DNA of 64,000 nucleotides from NCBI RefSeq assembly GCF_000315625.1, contig NW_005434664.1, positions 295,765 through 359,764 on the forward strand, written 5' to 3'. Made by a program: the position numbers and the translations under genes. Shown here one piece after another: positions 4,132 to 16,000 of the stretch. Every line of letters begins with the position of its first letter. Position 1 is the first letter of the stretch. Source of the stretch: Guillardia theta CCMP2712 (taxonomy: Eukaryota; Protista; Cryptophyta). Below the pieces are notes generated by a model. The model was not told the DNA's origin and did no database searches. It worked only from the letters and a program-made list of their open reading frames with translations.

Positions 4132-5978
4132 ACCTCCCAAGAAGCTGGAGAACAATCCTCCAAGAAAGTTGCCAGCCGAGGAGGAGGAGGAGGATTTCTT
4201 TCCTCCCTCGTCAGTCCGAGTGGAGTTCTTGTCTTGCATGTTAACGGGGAAGTTACGGAAGAGCTTTGAGCGGTAAGAACCAAGCATGCCTCCTGCTTCT
4301 GTGCTCGTGGTCGTCTGGGTGGAGTTGCTCGTAAACCTCTTGCGCGTGCTGCTTTGGAAAATTTCACGGAATAGATCTTTCTGCTGCTTGGCCTCTTCCT
4401 GCGAGAAATCTTAGTGAAATAGTCTCACCAAAGATGGCAGAGACGACGGACAAGAGGGAAAGATGACGGATAAATTACCTTGGTGATCTTGCCAGACTCA
4501 TCCTTATCAAAGATCTTGAATCTCTTAAGGAACCACTTCTTGGGATCAGCAGAAGCTTGCGCTCGGAGGGCAAGAGATGGTCGAATGTGTTTGGTGAACT
4601 CATCAATGTCGATTGAACCATCCTTGTCATCATCAACCTGTATCCATGTCAGCATAGACAGCAAGCCAAGCCGACACAGCGTGCCCACCATAGCAAAGAT
4701 CACGCTTGTGCTCTTCCTCGGGACAAGGGTAGACGTCGTGGTGGCATCCTGCCCAGAGCTAGTGGTCGAAGGAGTTTCGGACTGCATTCCTCCGTCACAA
4801 AAACTCTCATGACTTTCTTCGCATGTCTCACAGTCCCAGTCGATCTTGCCTCAGAGAATCCTTCACGTGCAGCAACTTTCTCGATGTCGGATGGGCTGAC
4901 CCCAGCTGCAAGAAGTTTCCCCTCCAGCCGTCTCAACCTGATTCGCCTGTCATCGGAACCGAAGGAAACAGATTGTGATTTACATCTCGTCGCTAGCTCT
5001 TTTCTGCTTCGTCAACTCTGTGTTTGGCACGAAGTCAGGAGCCTTTTCGATCATTTCTGGGAGATGAACCTTGAATCACAGCAGATTTCTGCTTCAAGTC
5101 CTTATTCAGATCCTTGATAAGGCCCTCAATCTCCTCCTGAGAATTACAAGCAAGCAGTCAATGGCTCCACGTGAACGTTGACAAGAACCTGGCGAGGCTT
5201 GTTTGAATCTTGAGCCTTGAGGTTGGAGAGCTCCTTCTTGAGAGAAATGTATTTCTAGAATTGAAGAGTCAAGTCAAAATCTAGAAGAAGACGAAGAAGA
5301 CGAAGAACAGAAAGTATCCGATACAAGTTTGGAACGGTTGACTCACATCTTTCTCCTGCCTGAAGGTTGAGACAGAGACTTGCTTCTGCTTTTCGATTTC
5401 AGCAAGGGCAGCCTTGGTCTCTGAGAGCTTGCTAGTGATCTACAGAGCGAATCAACATGATATGAGATACTAGCATGAATATTGACAATCACCTTTGAAA
5501 CTTGTGTCTGAAGCTCTGAACTTTTCTGCTTCTCGTCTTGCAACTCCAACCTCGTCTTCTTCAATGCCTCACTCTTTCTCAGCTTCTCGTCATCAACATC
5601 GGTCGCCCACTTGTCGCATCGAGCACGATTCTTCCTGGCCTTGATGAGGTTGGCATTGCAAACCATCAACTCTTCCTTGCGCAGTTTCAACTCTGAGATG
5701 GCCTGCTTCAGCCGAGCGTTCTCCGTCGCAACCTTCCCAAGGGTGGTTTTGAGGAGGCTAATCTGCTGTTGCAACGCCAAGCCCTTGCCGATCTCGTCTA
5801 TCCCCTCTGCAAGGCCAAAAAGTTCAGCTGAGGAAAGGAGACTAGCTATGGACTTACTGGCTATATCCTGCGAGGAAGCTGCGCTCGATCGCGATCGATC
5901 CATCCTCTGGTAGAAGAACGCTACAGCTGCAAGGAGTGCAACCATGGCGATAACGAGCGAAACCTTTGCAGCCGACAT
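3677..5978 (-). CDS. Signal-anchored coiled-coil / EF-hand-pair protein with Ser-rich tail
   Basis: N-terminal TM VSLVIAMVALLAAVAFFY, then a coiled coil, EF loops DDDKDGSIDIDEF and DKDESGKITK|EE, poly-Ser and several NxS/T sequons. The last-exon frame is uncertain. Confidence 0.7.
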
Positions 5979-8363
5979 ACTTGCTATCGAGTCGAATTAT
6001 CCACTAACGAGCTTTACTTCACCTACACGGAAGTTAGCAGTATGCCAGAATGCACAGAGCATAACAAAGACATTAATATCGATATGATACAAACAGGTAC
6101 AACATCAGGATTCACCTGCAAGATTGTATTCCCTCCAATTTAATGCATAGAAGGTTCGCCACAAGCCGAAAACGAATCCTGACACCGCAAGGGTTAAAAT
6201 TCACCTTGAAGTGTGTCGACAAGGAGATCAAGCAATCGTCTCTTCTCGTTCCTGGTGATACCTATCGATATTACAAGGCTTCGCCTCAGCCTGATCCTTT
6301 CTTTTCCTCGCTTGTGAACCAAATCTTACTCCGCTCTTATCATGGCTGAAACTGACCGACAGGCCAACCTCCAATCCTTATCGTCTATACACGTCTTTCT
6401 CCCTTCTTCTACAGGAATGCTTTTATCTGCTGCAAGTTAGACATCCACCATTCAATGCCTGCATCCCTGAAATGTCTCTTTCTCCTCCTCTGCTCCGGCC
6501 AACCCCGAAATCAGTTACTGAGCCCTCGATTCCTCCTGCCTGAAGGTAACTTCCACTATCATGTCTTCCTTCTCCCTTCACATCTTTAGTCTGATCATTT
6601 CCACAATTCTACGCCTCCCCATCACCTCGCCCTGTCCTACGTTCCCTCCATTCCCTGGTCCCCCTGCCTGCTATCCGCCATGAACGGTGCGCGGCTACGT
6701 GGCTCGAGTAGAACAAGGGCAAAGACTGGAGGTGGGGGTACATATGCAGGGGTGGGTTCTTGATACGTTGGATAAGTCATGGTGGGGTCGTGATATTTGT
6801 CAATTTTTCTCCATGGGGTCATCAAATCATCCATGATCACGGGTTATTTTTCCAAGATATTCAAGGGTAGAGGAACAGGTACTGGCAAAAAGGTATGGTG
6901 GGGTAGTAGACTAGTCCTTGACATTGTGAGGGGTTGTAATTTTCATGGGTAGGGGTCATACAGACCACCAGTGGCAGGGCTTCCTATGGAGGGTTTCAGG
7001 TGGGCGAGGTTCTCTACGTCTGCGGGTGGGGGTAGTCGTTTATGAGTTGATGGGTGGAATGAAGGACATGGGGTACCTACCCCACCCCATGAAATATAAG
7101 AAAACTTCTGTCTGAGAGGGGTACTTGATTCACTACCCACCCATGTCATTGGTGAATCTATTAACTTTTCACCCCTACTTATTTGCTTGCACCCGTCAGT
7201 GGAGCCGAAAAGTACCCACCCTTGAAACAGAGATACCACCCCTACAAAAATTATCACCCACCTGATCCTGATGATTAGTAGGGTAAGGCCGGCGGCGTGG
7301 GCCCGGCTGCACTGAAGTCCCGGCGACCGTACGATCGGCCCGCCCGGCGCCGGGCTCGGCGCCCCGGGCCCCGGGCGCGGCCGCCGCGGCCCGGCCGGCC
7401 CCCGGGCCCCGGATCATTGCATGATCATCGGATCGGACACTGTCAGTGACGCCGGCCGGGCCGTGTCGGGCCATCGTAGTTAACTCAGACGGTCACTGGC
7501 CGACGGTTACCGGGCCGGGCGCGGCCGCGGGCCAGGCGGCCGGGCCGCCGGTGAGGTAAATGAGGCTAGCCTCAGGCTCCGAGTGCCTTAGTCACGGTCT
7601 TGCCGAGTCCGATCAGTCGGACCGGTGACCGTGTCAACGGTGATGAGTCGCAGTTGAACTTGAACGGTCAAGTTCACGGTTGGCCCGGTTCGGAAGTTCT
7701 GAGTCGGACACTCGCCCCGGATGCCAGCCTGAGAGTACCGGGTCGGACCGTGACTGGCACTCAGCGCCTTTGGAGGCTGAGGCTTGCCGCTGGGCCTGTC
7801 ACCGTGTGTCAGCCTGTGGCGGCGCAACTTGCCAGGATCATCGGATGCGGCAGGAAAGGACACTGTGACAGGGAGGCCTGACAGTGAACTTCGGAAGCTG
7901 ACGAAGATCCTGGACCGTCCCGGATGCAAAATCAGTTTACAAGTCGGACGGTAGGAACACCTGCCACATCTTGCGAGGCCAAGAGACCATCCGGGGCCAG
8001 CGCTACGGTTGAAACGGAGCTGGGGTTGGAGAATCAACCGTCTGGGGATTCGCAGATATTCCGAGTCTCGGAGTCTATCCTGCTGCAAACTTCCAAGCAG
8101 CTGTTGCAGGCAGCACATGTTCACACCCACCAATACTTTTTGCGTGGAATCCTATCGCAATGCAATTGGAAATTGCTCCAACTGGGCTAAATCAGCGTTG
8201 AGATCATCCAGCGAGAGAAATCTTGCGGGGCAAAGAGACCATCTACTCGCCTCTTTGAAGTTGAAGCCTCGGAATGATTGCTCTTCTGGTAACTCACTCC
8301 GGTAAAACACTTTACTAAATTACAAGCGGAATCATCAGGTAAATCGTTTTTTACCTGTCAACA

Positions 8364-8675
8364 TCATGATATACTGTCTACAAACAATCTTTCGTTGTCC
8401 TCCCCTACAATGTTCCCTCCTCGCGTCATCGACGGTCCCCACGGGCTCCTCTCCTTCATCCTCAGCCTGCTGTACCCGCCGTCCTCGGCGAAGTCTCCTC
8501 GGCGATCGATGGAAGGGCGCATGCAGCAGGGGACTGGAGACGGGGCACGAGAAGGCGCACAGGGCGAAGCCTTGAGGGAGCTTGAGTCGTCGACAATAAT
8601 TCTTGCATCGTGATGATGCCACGAAGTTGGATTCTGGCGGCAAGAAAAAGAAGGTAACATGATCGCGCTGCACAT
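8364..8675 (-). CDS. Microprotein of SIDxxG-repeat family, copy A (103 aa, Met-Cys start)
   Basis: Intronless ORF MCSAIM...RPSIDRRGDFAEDGGYSRLRMKERSPWGPSMTRGGNI; aligns without gaps to paralogs in the same 4 kb. Confidence 0.6.
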   Translation of the reverse strand: MCSAIMLPSFSCRQNPTSWHHHDARIIVDDSSSLKASPCAPSRAPSPVPCCMRPSIDRRGDFAEDGGYSRLRMKERSPWGPSMTRGGNIVGEDNERLFVDSIS

Positions 8676-9309
8676 TTTCTAGAGGGAGATGGATACTCGA
8701 TGAATGGTGAGAAAGTACGGCAGATAGCAGGGCGAACAGGCAGACTGGGGGGATGGAGCGTGCACGTTGGCTGCAGGGAGGAGGCAGGGCTTACTAAAGA
8801 CTGAAAAGGGCGCCCCCAGTCAGCAGGGATTCGGAGACGATCTCCGGAGAATATGGGACGAATTGTTTGCCTTGCTTACAGGCCAAGAGGGCTGACTGGT
8901 CAGCATATTTGCAAAACTTCTTCTTTCAATGACGCAGTTTTTGTGTCACGTTACCACCTGAGGCCGGTGCCATTGCAAATTCTTGAAAACCCTCTTTTTC
9001 ATCGTACATCCCGCTAAACCTCGTCCCATACTGTATCCAGTTATTCAGATCACGTTACTTGTCAAAGGATACGCACCGCTTCTAAAGATCGATGACATTG
9101 TATCATTCCTTGAGTAATAACGCCCTACAACGAACTTGTGCATCACGATCCCCTGTACTTTTTCAAGTGAGAATTTCAAAAAAGAGACCCAACTATCCTC
9201 AAAGAATGCATTTTTGCTGGATTTGAAGATGTCGTATGCAATGGTTTAGACATGAAATGTAGATCCACATTGGTCATCATGTTGCTCTCCCGACACAACT
9301 GCAGATTTT

Positions 9310-9510
9310 TTGTCGGTGCTTCCCCATCACAACACCCGGCCCACACGCCCTGCAAACATCCCCTCATGTGCAAGGCCCTCGATCCATCTGCAAGGACGGA
9401 TACTACAAGGCGGGGGATGCCCATGGCTGGTGCTGTCTAAGCAGAGCCTGAGCAGCTTGAGAAGCTGCAAGGGAGGGCGATGGATAGGAGGAGGATATAA
9501 CAAGGACTAA
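9310..9510 (+). pseudogene. Degenerate copy B of SIDxxG-repeat microprotein
   Basis: Near-identical inverted DNA match to 12225-12378. It has no in-frame ATG, D>H and GGY>GGC changes, and a 24-nt deletion removing the second SIDxxG motif. Confidence 0.55.
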
Positions 9511-9600
9511 AGAAAAGAATGAATAAAGAAGTTTGACGAGCGATGGATAGGAGGAGGATATAACAAGGACTAAAGAAAAGAATGAATAAAGAAGTTTGAC
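9477..9600. repeat. 63-bp tandem duplication
   Basis: GCGATGGATAGGAGGAGGATATAACAAGGACTAAAGAAAAGAATGAATAAAGAAGTTTGAC occurs at 9477 and 9540. Confidence 0.9.
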
Positions 9601-9999
9601 CGAGCTGTGCGTAGCTTTGAAGCTTTCAGCAGTAGGAGAAGAGATTTTTGATTGGCCAGGGGCCAGTGGCGGGGTGGATGCATTGGACAGAACGCGGCTG
9701 GAATGCTGACGAAGCAGCACTGTCTGTCAGGTATGAAAGACTTGTAGACGACTAGGCCAGGTACATTCTTCGTTTCTCCTTCTCAAATTCACATGGTTTG
9801 TGTTGGATACTGGTTGTAACAGAAAACAGCATTCAATACGGTATCAATCAATGACAATGACAAGACTGACGTAAATACTTTGAAGTACATGGATGAGTAG
9901 CAAAAATGCTATAACACGTAGGATACATGCAAGATATATTCGACTGCAGGATATGATACAATTTATATACAATCGTTACACTACACCTAGTTTTGCACC

Positions 10000-10290
10000 T
10001 TACAGCCATCTTTTGTTGTCCTCCCCTACAATGTTCCCTCCTCGCGTCATCGACGGTCCCCACGGGCTCCTCTCCTTCATCATCAGCCTGCTGTACCCGC
10101 CGTCCTCGGCGAAGTCTCCTCGGCGATCGATGGAAGGGCGCATGCAGCAGGGGACTGGAGACGGGGCACGAGAAGGCGCACGGGGCGAAGCCTTGAGGGA
10201 GCTTGAGTCGTCGACGATAATCTCTGACTGAGAGCACTGTCCAGTGGATGGAGAGGAGGGACGAGTGATGATGTAAGCAGGGATGCACAT
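10000..10290 (-). CDS. Microprotein of SIDxxG-repeat family, copy A' (96 aa, Met-Cys start)
   Basis: MCIPAY...RPSIDRRGDFAEDGGYSRLMMKERSPWGPSMTRGGNI. About 210 bp are near-identical to copy A, and a TATA-like TATATAG lies about 65 bp upstream. Confidence 0.6.
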   Translation of the reverse strand: MCIPAYIITRPSSPSTGQCSQSEIIVDDSSSLKASPRAPSRAPSPVPCCMRPSIDRRGDFAEDGGYSRLMMKERSPWGPSMTRGGNIVGEDNKRWL

Positions 10291-10349
10291 TGTTTCCAGA
10301 GAGTGGGGAGCAGCGGCAGGCGAATAGGATGGAGAGAATTCTTCGAATG

Positions 10350-10670
10350 CCTCTATATAGGGTGGAGGGGAGTCTTTATTAAGGGAAGAACGTCAGCAGG
10401 TGTCACAGGTGTCTTCACGTTATACGAAATACCGTGATATCAAGAATTTCTTCTCATAGTTACTCACGGGTGCCACTGGCTGACGTCAGCATTTCCTTTA
10501 AACTGCCTCCTTCCGAAGATCGGTCTTAGCGTTAAGACCGTTAAACATCGAGTACGCCCACCCCCCACCCCTCAAAAGGAAGGAATTTGACCCCGTGATA
10601 CTTCGGCCGGAAGAGCGTACCGAGACTGCACGGAACAGCACGGCTCAGCACGGCTAAATTTTACAGTGAT
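10350..10670. promoter_or_regulatory. Probable bidirectional promoter between microprotein copies A' and C
   Basis: CTATATAG (10353-10360), a perfect CRE-type palindrome TGACGTCA (10481-10488), an imperfect palindrome GGTCTTAGCGTTAAGACC (about 10522-10539) and GCACGG x3 at 10-bp spacing (10628-10653). Confidence 0.35.
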
Positions 10671-10905
10671 GCCATGGTCCGCGTGACGCATGTAGTAAAA
10701 CATCATGTGTCCATGTGACTTGTCGACGCACCCAAAGACGATCCTACCTCGTGCCTCCCAGGAGTCTTATCGCCCCTCCTTGCTCTTCTTTACCCGCCGC
10801 CCCCTTCCCTCCCTGCAAGCTGACAGACGTCTCGCCTCCTGCTCCTCCCTTTGCTTCTTCGAGCACTCTAAGCTTTCTGGGTCCTTCGAGCTTTAAGCAA
10901 GTCTC

Positions 10906-11421
10906 ATGGCTATAGAAGCCGAGGAGGTGTCACATAGGCGCTGTATGATGGCACGCGGAGCTCAAGCCTTTCGTTCTCTGCGCATCCATCAAGACAAGAA
11001 ATGTAAGGGCTTGACACGGGACAGAGCATTCTCCGCCACATTCACATGCATCAGTATGACTGACAGAGATATGAGTAGAAATCTTTTGTTGCCGTTTCAA
11101 GCCCGGTCATCGTGGCCGGCTGCAAGCCACTACCCACATATGCGATCCATCGATACAAAAGGAAACTTTGTGGCAGGAGGAGGATACAGCAAATTTGGGA
11201 GGACAGCACAGGTACCACTCGGCCTATCGATAGGACGAGAAGGAAACTTCATAGCAGCCCCCAAGGTTCCATCACGAACGAGGAGGAGAAGCTGGGGCAG
11301 CGACTTGCGCGAGATGCAAGATGTTTTCAAAGACATCAGAATTGTGCGCGGCAACATGTGCGGAGACGGGAGGTTTGTTTCGGAGTGGAGTGCCTTGTCA
11401 GGGGTGTACTTCCTAGAATAG
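10906..11421 (+). CDS. Microprotein of SIDxxG-repeat family, divergent copy C
   Basis: RSIDTKGNFVAGGGYSKFGRTAQVPLGLSIGREGNF aligns gaplessly to copies A and B' with synonymous codon differences. The start codon is uncertain. Confidence 0.55.
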   Translation: MAIEAEEVSHRRCMMARGAQAFRSLRIHQDKKCKGLTRDRAFSATFTCISMTDRDMSRNLLLPFQARSSWPAASHYPHMRSIDTKGNFVAGGGYSKFGRTAQVPLGLSIGREGNFIAAPKVPSRTRRRSWGSDLREMQDVFKDIRIVRGNMCGDGRFVSEWSALSGVYFLE

Positions 11422-12196
11422 GTGGGGCAAGTTATTTGTTGGTTGTAAATTTTGAGTCATGAATGAAATTTATTCGGCAATGTCTATAGAAGAAGATACT
11501 GCCATTGCATTGTATGATATTCGTCATCAAGTTAGAGTAGAGAGAAATTTGCAGTGCTCATTTCAACCCAGTGCAGTATGATCGATGATTCAACTATTTA
11601 ACCCAGTGCTCTATGATCGAATGATTGAACTATCTCTCCAACGATTGTGAATTTGAATGTCTCATAGAATGGATGTTTGTGGATTGGTCCTGTACTTTGC
11701 TTTGCAGAAGCAAATCGACCTTGCAAATTCTATATTCTCTCGGATCTTTCTCAAGTGGGATTCACACGTCATCTCCCATGCGCCCTGGCTTCTTGTCGTT
11801 TCTTGCCATGCCGCTTTGAAACAAGTAGACCACAATTTTCTTCATTGCAAAGAGAAATTGTGTTTTGTAATAAGGGTGAACTGCATCTCATCATCCAATG
11901 TTATGAAGCAGTCAAATACTGACAGCTTCAAACTTGTGGTCTGCCCCAAGCAACGAGGAAACTGAACGAGTCTCTTAGCGTCGACTGTCGTGTGCTTGCA
12001 GCTTCCTTGCAATCGATGCCCATAGCCATCACCATGTCTCGAAGGTACATCGTTCGAGACGGGCCGAGAAATAGAGCAGTTTGGACATTTGCTTTCCCCT
12101 TCATCGTCAAAAGCAAAGAGCTCGAAGAAGCATCATACCGTACATTGTTTTATTTTCCCGAGCTTTCATCCTAGCTCCTCTCTCTATCTCCTTCTG

Positions 12197-12541
12197 TCAA
12201 TCTCCCGCCAGATCTATTCTCAGCCATCGCCCTCCCTCGCAGCTTCTCAAGCTCCCTTGCTGGTCGATGGATGGTGAGCTCGGGCTCTGCTTAGACAGCA
12301 CCAGCCATGGGTATCCTCCGCCTTGTAGTATCCGTCCTTGCAGATCGATCGAGGGCCTTGCACATGAGGTGATGTTTGTGGATGAGCACGGATGAACGTC
12401 TGCATGCGACGAGTTTTGCAATCCAGCAGAAGCGAAGTATGATCTATCCGAACGTGACGCCTCGTTGCCTTCGCAGCTAGCGTGAACACCAGGGTGACGA
12501 GATTCTGAGCAGTGGCAGACCTGAGTCATTGAGCTGCACAT
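12197..12541 (-). CDS. Microprotein of SIDxxG-repeat family, copy B' (114 aa, Met-Cys start)
   Basis: MCSSMTQ...RPSIDLQGRILQGGGYPWLVLSKQSPSSPSIDQQGSL; intronless. Confidence 0.6.
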   Translation of the reverse strand: MCSSMTQVCHCSESRHPGVHASCEGNEASRSDRSYFASAGLQNSSHADVHPCSSTNITSCARPSIDLQGRILQGGGYPWLVLSKQSPSSPSIDQQGSLRSCEGGRWLRIDLAGD

Positions 12542-12847
12542 ATGTGATGCAAGGATGAAGGAGTCTATCGGGCTCCGATCAGCCTGCAGCGCCTCCCCTG
12601 CTGCCCCCTACCTCATTGCGCGCACAAAGCAGGTGGCGATGTCTAATCATGTCTGTGGTCAAAAGTTCAGATGCTGAGGGTGGGGTGGTTGGTTTGTAGC
12701 TACAGTGTGGGGTATATTAGGTACATTTGAAGGCTATGTACACGGGTAGTGAACTCCTCTGCCGTTCATTGTGCGCTAAATGTGGGGTGGGGCTGAAGGG
12801 GGTTATGTCAGCAAGCAAAACACACCTCGTAGTTATTGTGATCCACT

Positions 12848-12968
12848 TTTACTCAAAGTTAAGTTAAAGATCAGTACGAGGACAATGACGAGAAGAGAAA
12901 AGACAGCAAGAACCAAACCTAATCCAGCCAACTGCTGTCCCCCAAACTTAACTGATACCTTCACTCAA
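12848..12968 (-). mobile_element. Dispersed short element, copy 1 (both ends present, internally shortened)
   Basis: The minus strand reads TTGAGTGAAGGTATCAGTTAAGTTTGGGGGACAGCAG...GGTTCTTGCTGTCTTTTCTCTTCTCG...TTGTCCTCGTACTGATCTTTAACTTAACTTTGAGTAAA and matches 45524-45719 and 58597-58775. Mobility is inferred from dispersal only. Confidence 0.65.
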
Positions 12969-13082
12969 CCTGAGTAAGGTCGCTCTTCACAGACAGGCTC
13001 TAATAATCATCGTGTAATAACATCGTAGATAGAATATCATGTACATGTCAAGCGGCATCATTGTGAAGACTCTGCTGTCTTG

Positions 13083-16000
13083 CTAGACAAAAGTCCCTTC
13101 CTCCAGGCGAAGTCGCCTCATGGCCTCCTCCTTTACCTTACTATTCCCAGTAGCCTTTGCTTCCCCGCCGCTCCGAGCAGCAGCCGGGCTGCCTGCAATG
13201 TCGACCCATCAGCTGGATGAAACTTTGAGGAGGAGGTCAAAGACCGTGAAGCAACTCAGCCCTTGTATCGGTGAAGCTGAGACCGAGCTGAAGGGAGCAG
13301 CATGCGTCACCCGAAGGACCGGAACGTGCGGAGACAGCGGGAGGAAGAGGAGGAGTCACCTCGGACAAGGCGGGTGCGGGCAGGTGAATTGTGTCGAGCT
13401 GGCTCTTTCATGCTGAACGACCCAGCGGTGAGACATCAGCGTCGAGCAGTAGCTACCGTCTCACCACTCGTGCATGCAGGCGAGGATGGCGGCATGGCTC
13501 TGCTTGAACTTGTGCTCGCGTTCCAGTCGCCCCCTCTCAGCCTCCATCAGGCCGGTGGCCTAGCAAGAGACAATGAGGTCTGAGTGAAGCTTTGCTCCTC
13601 GACTTGCCTGCTTCTGTAGGCATGCCAACTCCTTGTTCGCTTCCTCAAGCTTCTGCTCGGTAAGTCTGACAAAGCATGAGTGCATGGAGGGCGATAGGAA
13701 GAACTCGGTACTTGTAGAGCTCCTCCTCCTCTCTCAGCTGATTCTCCTTAGCCTGAGAAGAGTCAGCACAAGCAAACATGCTGTTGGCAAGGAAAGTACC
13801 TTCCGTTGTGCTTCCAGCTCTCTCCGAGCTACCTTGAGCTGCTCCACTCTCTCGCTCTCTCGCTTCTTCTCTCTGCATGGAGGACTGAGTTTGCTAGACG
13901 TGGGCAAGGCTGTGACCTGAACAGCTCCGCGTCCAACGCTCTCTCCCTCTCTAGTGCTCTGCCAAAGTAGAATCTGGTCAAGGAGGGGAGGGAGCAGGGA
14001 GACGAGAAGGATACGGGGACAAGGCAAAGGTGATATGCAACTGGAGGGGACGGATAGAGATTGAAAGAGAGGGAAATGGAGAATGAAAGAGGACGAGGAC
14101 GAGGACGAGGGCGAGGATGAGGGCGAGGACGAAGTGATCACTTCAGCTTGTCCATCTCCGTCTCTTTTAACTTCTGCTGAGCCTGCAAGATTTTCTGCCG
14201 TCACTCTCTGCCTTCAAGAGCATGTCGACCTCACATCTTCTCTTGCCCCCCGCGCCAGGGAAAGCTCGGCTTCTACTTTCGAGAGCTGGGCAACGTGATA
14301 GTGAGGAGGAGAAGAGGAAGGGGGTGGTAAGAAGAGCAGAACCTGATCTCCTATCACTTGCATCCTCTCTTTCAGCGCCTGCAAGACGGTCAGAGGAGAG
14401 ACACAGCGATGCAATATAGGGGCAACCTGAGCCAGCTCGTCTTCTGTCTCAAGAAGTTTCTGGAGTTTCAAGATTGTCAGCACGAACAGGCAGACAGGCA
14501 GGCTGGCAGGCTGAAGGGCTGGCAAGCGAGCGAACATAACACAAGAGATTCGAGTCCTCTTCAGCGGCAGCTCAGACTGGTTGCTTACTTGCACTCTGGC
14601 ATTCTCAGACTCCAGATGCGCGAGTGTGTCTTCAAGTTGCCTGCCCCATTTCAACTTAATATCAGAAACATCGGAGCCACTGCTCGACCTCTCCCTCTGG
14701 ACGGCCTCTTGCTGCGTCATCAACGCGTAAGGAAGCAGCCACAACAACGAGCAAGGCTGAGGAACCTTCAGCACGTCAGCCTCCTTTCCGATCCGCTCCA
14801 TCTGTAGCAGCAGCTCCTGCTCCCTCTGGATGCCGAGGCGTCAGCAGCGACCGGAACGGGGGAAGCAGACAGTGACGATGGGGACTCACAGCCTTGTACT
14901 GCAACTCGTCGGCCTCGTGGGCCCTGCCGACGGTCTCAGCACAGGAGGAGGCAACAGGAAAGCGTCACTTCTGCTCCTTGTGGAGCTTCTCCTCCCAGGC
15001 CTTCTGCTCTGCTCTGATCCTCTGCCATCCAGCATCAGCTGTGCTGCCGCCCAGCTGGGCCTGCGGCACCTCCTTGAGAGTCTCGAGATGTTGTTGCCGG
15101 CCCTCGCTTTCCCCCTCCAACTCGCTCAGCTGCCTCTGGAGCTGCTCTAGCGCGTAAAAGAAACTATCAAGAGCTCCCTTGTGGCCGTCACCTCAGTGTT
15201 CTTGTCTCGCAGCTCATGCAGGACTTGCTCGCTGTCTTGGTATGACTGCTCCGCCTGCCGCAAGACGCTCGGAGGACATCAGGGAGGGGCAAGGCTCGGA
15301 CCTCAGCGACAGATTGCATCAGCTGCTCGTTTTCAGCCTGCACACTCGAGTCAGAGCAGAGCTCAGGGGCTCGACTGCCTTGCCTCCAGGTTCCGAAGCT
15401 GCTCCTCCGCCACTTGCTTCCTCGTCATGACTGCCAGGGAAACTGAGTGACACGGCCTCGCCCTCTGGTGCTGAGCGACCTTCTTGGTTCTTCGCCTGCA
15501 GCTCCCGCTCGGACTTCTACCATGGCCATCGAACGTCAACAGACGGCACAGGGGGCAGGAGCTGGAAAGCACCTCCTCCTGCTTCAGCTCTTCCTCCAGC
15601 TGCTGTCTCCGCATCTACCGGTCAGGAAGTCAGACACGAAGGAGGGGAGGGGGGGGGTTGTATGACCTCGAGGCTTCTGATGCTGAGCTCCTCCTCCTCC
15701 TTCGACTTCTGGTGATCCTCAAGTCTCTGAGAAGGAGAGGGTTGAGAAGACCTGAGACCAACACAGAGGAGGAGAGAACGGAAGCAACAGGAGCAGGGCA
15801 GGGCAGGGCAGGGGCAGAGGCAAAAGAGTGTCAGGACCTGCTCGATGAGACGAAGAAGCTCTGCCTCCTCTGCCTCAGCAGCAGATCGTTCTAACTGTGT
15901 CCTCCCGCATCAGCGGGAACCAGAAGCAAGGAGGCGGGGGGGCGGGGGCGTACCACGAGGGCTTGCAAGCGAATTTCAAGCTCGCCTTTCTGACCTTGTG

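Follow-up and report, generated by a model that had tools for sequence, protein, structure and literature searches.

A 64,000-nucleotide (nt) stretch of the cryptophyte Guillardia theta CCMP2712 genome (hereafter the window; assembly GCF_000315625.1, contig NW_005434664.1, forward-strand positions 295,765 to 359,764) contains five open reading frames (ORFs) on alternating strands between its positions 8364 and 12541. All five share a core of 36-37 residues, in which two S-I-[DG]-x-x-G motifs stand at a spacing of 27 residues. They belong to an uncharacterised family of proteins specific to one clade, and do not amount to a new system whose mechanism is known; the family is confined to the Guillardia/Hanusia lineage and its genes are intron-free. 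Our preferred explanation, to which we assign a probability of roughly 70%, is that the ORFs form a local cluster of this tandem-amplifying family of small proteins. One ORF (C) would then be a canonical member, two (A' and B') transcribed short forms and two (A and B) inactive copies, with the proteins acting through short motifs.

The cluster had been described in an earlier note made from the sequence alone, and all five ORFs were located at the coordinates and on the strands given there. The ungapped alignment, the 27-residue motif spacing and the differing synonymous codons were also as described. Along the window, A is an intact ORF of 103 amino acids (aa) on the minus strand (8364-8675; core 8406-8516). 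B lies on the plus strand (9256..9510, with its ORF at 9310-9510 and a residual core at approximately 9376-9462). A' encodes 96 aa on the minus strand (10000-10290; core 10027-10137), C encodes 171 aa on the plus strand (10906-11421; core 11143-11253), and B' encodes 114 aa on the minus strand (12197-12541; core 12245-12355). A six-frame motif scan of the 64-kb window confined S-[ILVM]-D-x-x-G...G-G-Y to these five loci, and B' carries two full S-I-D-x-x-G motifs.

Counted by independent sequence type, the cluster has three members (A/A', B/B' and C) rather than five. A and A' have in common a sharply bounded segment of 218 nt with 4 substitutions (98% identity; 8387-8600 on the A side). The 155 nt common to B and B', also sharply bounded, differ by 6 substitutions, and in B 24 nt are deleted in frame (~95% identity). 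Outside these segments the flanks are unrelated. By blastn, the A, B and C types did not resemble one another as DNA, and the window contained no further copies. The five microprotein copies proposed earlier are thus five ORFs but three sequence types; C, at 171 aa, is not a microprotein, B is a pseudogene and A is silent.

Family membership was established from protein profiles. We built a core profile hidden Markov model (HMM) from members outside the window only, and searched it against 3038 six-frame ORF pieces from the window and from L001, a paralogous locus described below. This HMM matched C (7e-16), B' (2.8e-6), A (1.7e-4) and A' (2.8e-4), with no other significant match in the window and with B below significance. 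A reverse profile made from the A and B types only matched the outside copies at 1.8e-7 to 4e-3, the best of which were C-like subfamilies. Whichever two copies of the 37-codon core were compared, conservation was lowest at the third codon position, and the core of outside family members keeps the same amino acids encoded by different DNA. Together, the codon-position pattern and the HMM matches imply similarity at the protein level that is beyond chance, in keeping with the earlier suggestion of a family under protein-level selection. A, A', B' and C all carry the core of the Guillardia/Hanusia SID-GNF family (GUITHDRAFT_99283-like), with its motifs 27 residues apart.

Canonical members of the SID-GNF family are ~170 aa long and have three parts: an N-terminal module, the core and a tail. 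The N-terminal module contains H-R-R-C, S-R-S-F or A-F-R-S-L, a basic R-R-x-S-W site and F-S-x-S-[CF]. The core runs from S-I-D-x-x-G-N-[LF] through G-G-[GA]-Y-x-x-L-G-[KR]-x-A-R to S-I-x-x-D-G-N-F, and the tail terminates exactly in L-S-G-x-[YF]-[YF]-L-E. In C, the N-terminal features are H-R-R-C, A-F-R-S-L and A-F-S-A-T-F, R-R-R-S-W sits after the core, and the terminus is L-S-G-V-Y-F-L-E. The core, N-terminal module and L-S-G-x-Y-F-L-E tail of C recur in the G. theta proteins GUITHDRAFT_99283, _110529 and _110531 and in transcripts of Hanusia phi. The N-terminal module and the tail are present in C and not in the short forms, and A also lacks the N-terminal module. Unlike the GUITHDRAFT and Hanusia relatives, A' and B' consist of the core only, with a Met-Cys start and an R-W-L end of their own.

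The distribution of the family is narrow. A protein search with C returned one relative, its H. phi orthologue (P0002), which is 173 aa long and 46% identical end to end, from the M-A-I start to the F-L-E end. Searched exhaustively with HMMER against 1.84 billion representatives, a profile of C and the Hanusia protein returned 7 proteins at E <= 0.001. All named matches were from G. theta CCMP2712 or H. phi, and one further match was a Logan contig. The G. theta paralogues are the three GUITHDRAFT proteins named above, deposited in GenBank as hypothetical proteins, while the H. phi members are EukProt transcripts P0002, P0004, P0007, P0009 and P0010. Two more H. phi members were added by a word-index search with the family profile. 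On record, we found no contig encoding C or its Hanusia orthologue. The family had been proposed as undescribed, which is correct in that it has no domain entry, but its paralogues were already in GenBank under the name hypothetical protein and its Hanusia members in EukProt. A degenerate two-motif DNA pattern run over metagenome contigs gave one match, which we took as chance given that the ORFs of that contig were unlike the family.

Like the cluster in the window, the G. theta paralogues are intron-free and arranged in tandem. They lie at two loci, L001 and L003, on assembly GCA_000315625.1, each of which has 3 tandem copies (two full-length and one partial at L001). The four copies at these loci with a defined ATG-to-stop ORF are uninterrupted and unspliced. 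Both clusters expose gaps in annotation. Two of the three copies at L003 are unannotated (8603-9109 and 11538-12047), and GUITHDRAFT_110529 and GUITHDRAFT_110531 (L001 9845-10354 and 13278-13787) are annotated from an internal methionine, so that the conserved N-terminal module is lost. The partial L001 copy (5530-5844) is engulfed by the start of a GDPD gene model. Within the window, A', B', A and B were all absent from a collection of 15 billion proteins, as expected from the earlier remark that gene predictors would likely miss such copies, and A' and B' are in no protein set.

We used the paralogues to gauge selection on the canonical form. Between the two other G. theta clusters, the ratio of non-synonymous to synonymous substitution rates (dN/dS) was 0.16-0.23 at a dS of 1.5-2.1, which is near saturation, and comparisons among A', B' and C were saturated in substitutions. 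The canonical family is thus constrained at the protein level. With at least three subfamilies common to two genera and under purifying selection, it is an established family and not a recent de novo ORF. It resembles orphan families of small disordered proteins in its restriction to one small clade, its low-confidence or disordered models, its tandem amplification and its rapid divergence; the subfamilies common to two genera and the purifying selection set it apart from orphan families that are recent de novo ORFs. The description of the copies as fast-evolving suits the A and B types but not the canonical paralogues, in view of their between-cluster dN/dS.

Transcription separates the copies into two groups. 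RNA evidence for region 7800-13300 came from one raw-read RNA sequencing run and from RNA-like contigs of three other studies. These data contained three discrete transcripts, of A', C and B', each colinear with the genome, unspliced and enclosing its ORF, and in each the first substantial ATG opens the family frame. The claim that the copies lack introns is thereby borne out for A', C and B'. The A' transcript (9945..10323) was represented by contigs of 368-386 nt in 3 runs and by a raw-read depth of up to 92. It had the highest depth of the three transcripts, and its poly(A) tail is evident from a loose poly(T) end before 9945, which identifies it as a minus-strand RNA. The C transcript (10757..11423) was covered by gap-free RNA-like contigs from 3 studies and by raw reads on the plus strand. 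Contigs of B' (12138..12622), 446-484 nt long, came from 3 runs, and depth there reached 270. In one run, A' and B' were transcribed more strongly than C. The facing ends of the divergent A' and C transcripts are at 10323 and 10757, and the 433-bp spacer between them (10324..10756) presumably serves as a shared bidirectional promoter region.

At approximately 10800-10827, RNA contigs from three runs diverged from the genome immediately 5' of a polypyrimidine tract, CTGAC and AG. These features could mark a splice acceptor, near 10825, within the 5' leader of gene C. The 30-nt sequence upstream of the apparent acceptor was not found in the window or in the fetched loci, and its source could be an exon further upstream, a paralogue or a chimeric contig.

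The remaining two copies showed no sign of activity. In the same region, no RNA contig covered A. When the A stretch itself was used as a query, it hit 11 RNA-like runs from 6 studies, each with exactly 0.24 of its words. We took these to be the words common to A and A', and A itself to be silent in these data, that is, a silent duplicate of A'. No transcript covered the B core, and the one 93-nt contig nearby (9508-9600, from one run) overlaps the B ORF by no more than its final 3 nt. The B frame has no ATG, its second motif is removed by the 24-nt in-frame deletion, and its core has D>H and Y>C changes, so that GGC replaces GGY. The lack of an ATG and the changes to core residues mark B as a pseudogene, a decayed copy of B'. 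A perfect tandem duplication with a 61-nt unit (period 63) occupies window positions 9477-9600; it covers the end of the B pseudogene and extends slightly past it.

The two short forms have the same layout despite extensive divergence. A' and B' are 31% identical and cannot be aligned as DNA, and both retain the core. The A, A' and B' ORFs begin with ATGTGCA, encoding Met-Cys (8673-8675, 10288-10290 and 12539-12541); beyond this start, their N-terminal regions do not align. In both A' and B', R-W-L falls exactly ten residues past the glycine of the second motif; A' ends there, and B' has 8 more residues. Selection accounts more readily than decay for a truncated layout that two such divergent types have in common.

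None of the members could be assigned to a known family, as had been anticipated. Pfam searches with all members at E up to 10 gave best E-values of 0.03-0.2 that differed between members and pointed to no family, and the best match among PDB sequences had E=0.62. Two ESM Atlas queries gave no usable match, and the Atlas model of GUITHDRAFT_99283 had a predicted local distance difference test score (pLDDT) of 0.37. A literature search by locus tag, accession and topic found no paper on the family. The short D-x-x-G-[NR]-[LF] turn motifs recall RHS/YD repeats and the D-x-[DN]-G loops of the EF-hand type. We rejected a repeat of either kind: there was no Pfam match at E up to 10, and spacing and residues fit neither consensus.

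AlphaFold was run twice on an alignment of 13 sequences, with mean pLDDT of 54.5 and 50.4. In both models the chain turns at each S-I-x-x-x-G-N-F, forms a short helix over G-Y-x-x-L-G-x-x-A-R and is otherwise disordered. Core pLDDT reached approximately 78 in the first model and was 59-66 in the second. These models are consistent with the earlier picture of two turn motifs on disordered arms, in that the motifs are modelled as beta-turn-like and the chains as otherwise disordered.

If our preferred explanation is correct, the proteins would be cytosolic, largely disordered and regulatory, acting through short motifs. A cytosolic location is suggested by the N-termini, none of which looks like a signal peptide by eye. 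The two S-I-x-x-x-G-N-F turns and the helix between them could make up a small binding or self-association unit, with phosphosites of the basic-kinase type and the conserved C-terminal tail as possible further docking points. The most likely origin of A' and B' is a neighbouring C-like gene, tandemly duplicated and truncated. Both short forms might compete with the canonical proteins for the same partner and so modulate them.

Several observations weigh against this explanation. Its functional part, namely motif-based binding and competition by the short forms, is hypothetical, and the protein products of all members are predicted from sequence. With mean pLDDT of 50-55, the structural reading of the models is tentative. 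The GC-rich A/A' segment is open in several frames, and ORF length alone is weak evidence there. Within clusters, dN/dS is about 0.6-0.8. A differs from A' by 1 synonymous and 3 non-synonymous changes and B from B' by 1 and 5, respectively; these changes look neutral, and the comparisons say little about constraint on the recent duplicates. Moreover, orthologues of the A and B types outside G. theta were not found in protein and family-profile word-index searches, and A' alone as a query in the word-index protein search gave no match. The missing orthologues are weak evidence because A' falls below the 100-aa cutoff usual for ORF callers in transcriptomes.

Some of the same observations are what we would expect if A' and B' were transcribed relics, either expressed pseudogenes or non-coding RNAs, with C the only working protein gene. 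The absence of orthologues in protein searches and the neutral-looking substitutions in recent duplicates both fit relics, as do the loss of the conserved N- and C-terminal modules and the low scores of A' and B' against the family core (18-24 bits). However, both retain an intact family frame that the first ATG of their transcripts opens, and the A and B types, at 31% identity, still keep Met-Cys, the core and R-W-L at an equal offset. Conservation is also lowest at third codon positions. Furthermore, the one clearly decaying copy, B, is also the one without a transcript over its core. On balance, we consider it unlikely that A' and B' are relics, although no other alternative fares better.

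The short forms can also be given a more specific role than in our preferred explanation. Plant-type microProteins such as LITTLE ZIPPER are truncated paralogues that keep one interaction domain and titrate full-length proteins. A' and B' are similar in being short, core-only paralogues adjoining a full-length member. The likeness to the plant proteins is one of gene architecture, and would be an analogy of mechanism, not membership. On this model, A' and B' would be translated core-only microProteins that compete for the partner of canonical SID-GNF proteins, their Met-Cys start might act as a cysteine-branch N-degron, and the family as a whole would be a new cryptophyte-specific, motif-based signalling module. 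If so, the N-degron start would make the levels of A' and B' respond to oxygen, nitric oxide or redox state. We regard this full set of propositions as improbable.

It is very unlikely that the ORFs are instead precursors of secreted or processed signalling peptides. In favour are the small size of the products, the multiple copies and restricted lineage of the family, and the basic R-R-R sites, which could be cleavage sites. Yet no N-terminus appears, by eye, hydrophobic enough for a signal peptide, and C is conserved over its whole length, including the extreme C-terminus.

Still less probable is that the block is a dispersed DNA repeat, such as a fragment of a transposon or miniature inverted-repeat transposable element, with the ORFs incidental. 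The sharp boundaries and unrelated flanks of the A/A' and B/B' segments are what such a repeat would leave. However, the A, B and C types are alike as protein and not as DNA, and neither the window nor 40 kb of paralogous loci held further copies. A repeat search found no inverted repeats flanking the copies, Pfam matched no transposase or other transposable-element family, and a full-length protein orthologue exists in another genus. We rejected this explanation because the similarity is at the protein level and, within the window and the paralogous loci searched, only two local pairs are alike as DNA. Least probable of all is a structured non-coding RNA or DNA regulatory element: S-I-D encoded as TCN-ATC-GAT places two ATCGAT-like palindromes 81 nt apart and the transcripts are short and abundant, but when 7500-13500 was scanned with Rfam at E up to 1 nothing rose above noise (only sR53 appeared, at 19 bits where the gathering score is 49; E=0.41), conservation follows codon positions, and outside members keep the amino acids with different DNA. 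The earlier note had named absence of transcripts, a transposable-element fragment and a known domain as findings that would count against it; we looked at each, and found transcripts but neither a transposable-element fragment nor a known domain.

These results add a verified, expressed and conserved family to a poorly annotated cryptophyte proteome. The presence of full-length and core-only paralogues in one cluster offers a simple test system for regulation by truncated paralogues outside plants and animals. Without an assigned function, the wider significance of the family is modest.

The surroundings of the cluster yielded three minor observations. Eight flanking ORFs had no match in Pfam. 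An element of ~40 nt at window positions 12849-12888 is common to numerous abundant RNA-like contigs, at depths of up to ~470, that differ in sequence on either side of it, and looks like a short repeat dispersed among transcripts. Finally, a transcribed neighbouring gene contains a 52-nt intron (13192-13243) that was present in three runs and reads CT..AC on the plus strand, corresponding to GT..AG on the minus strand.

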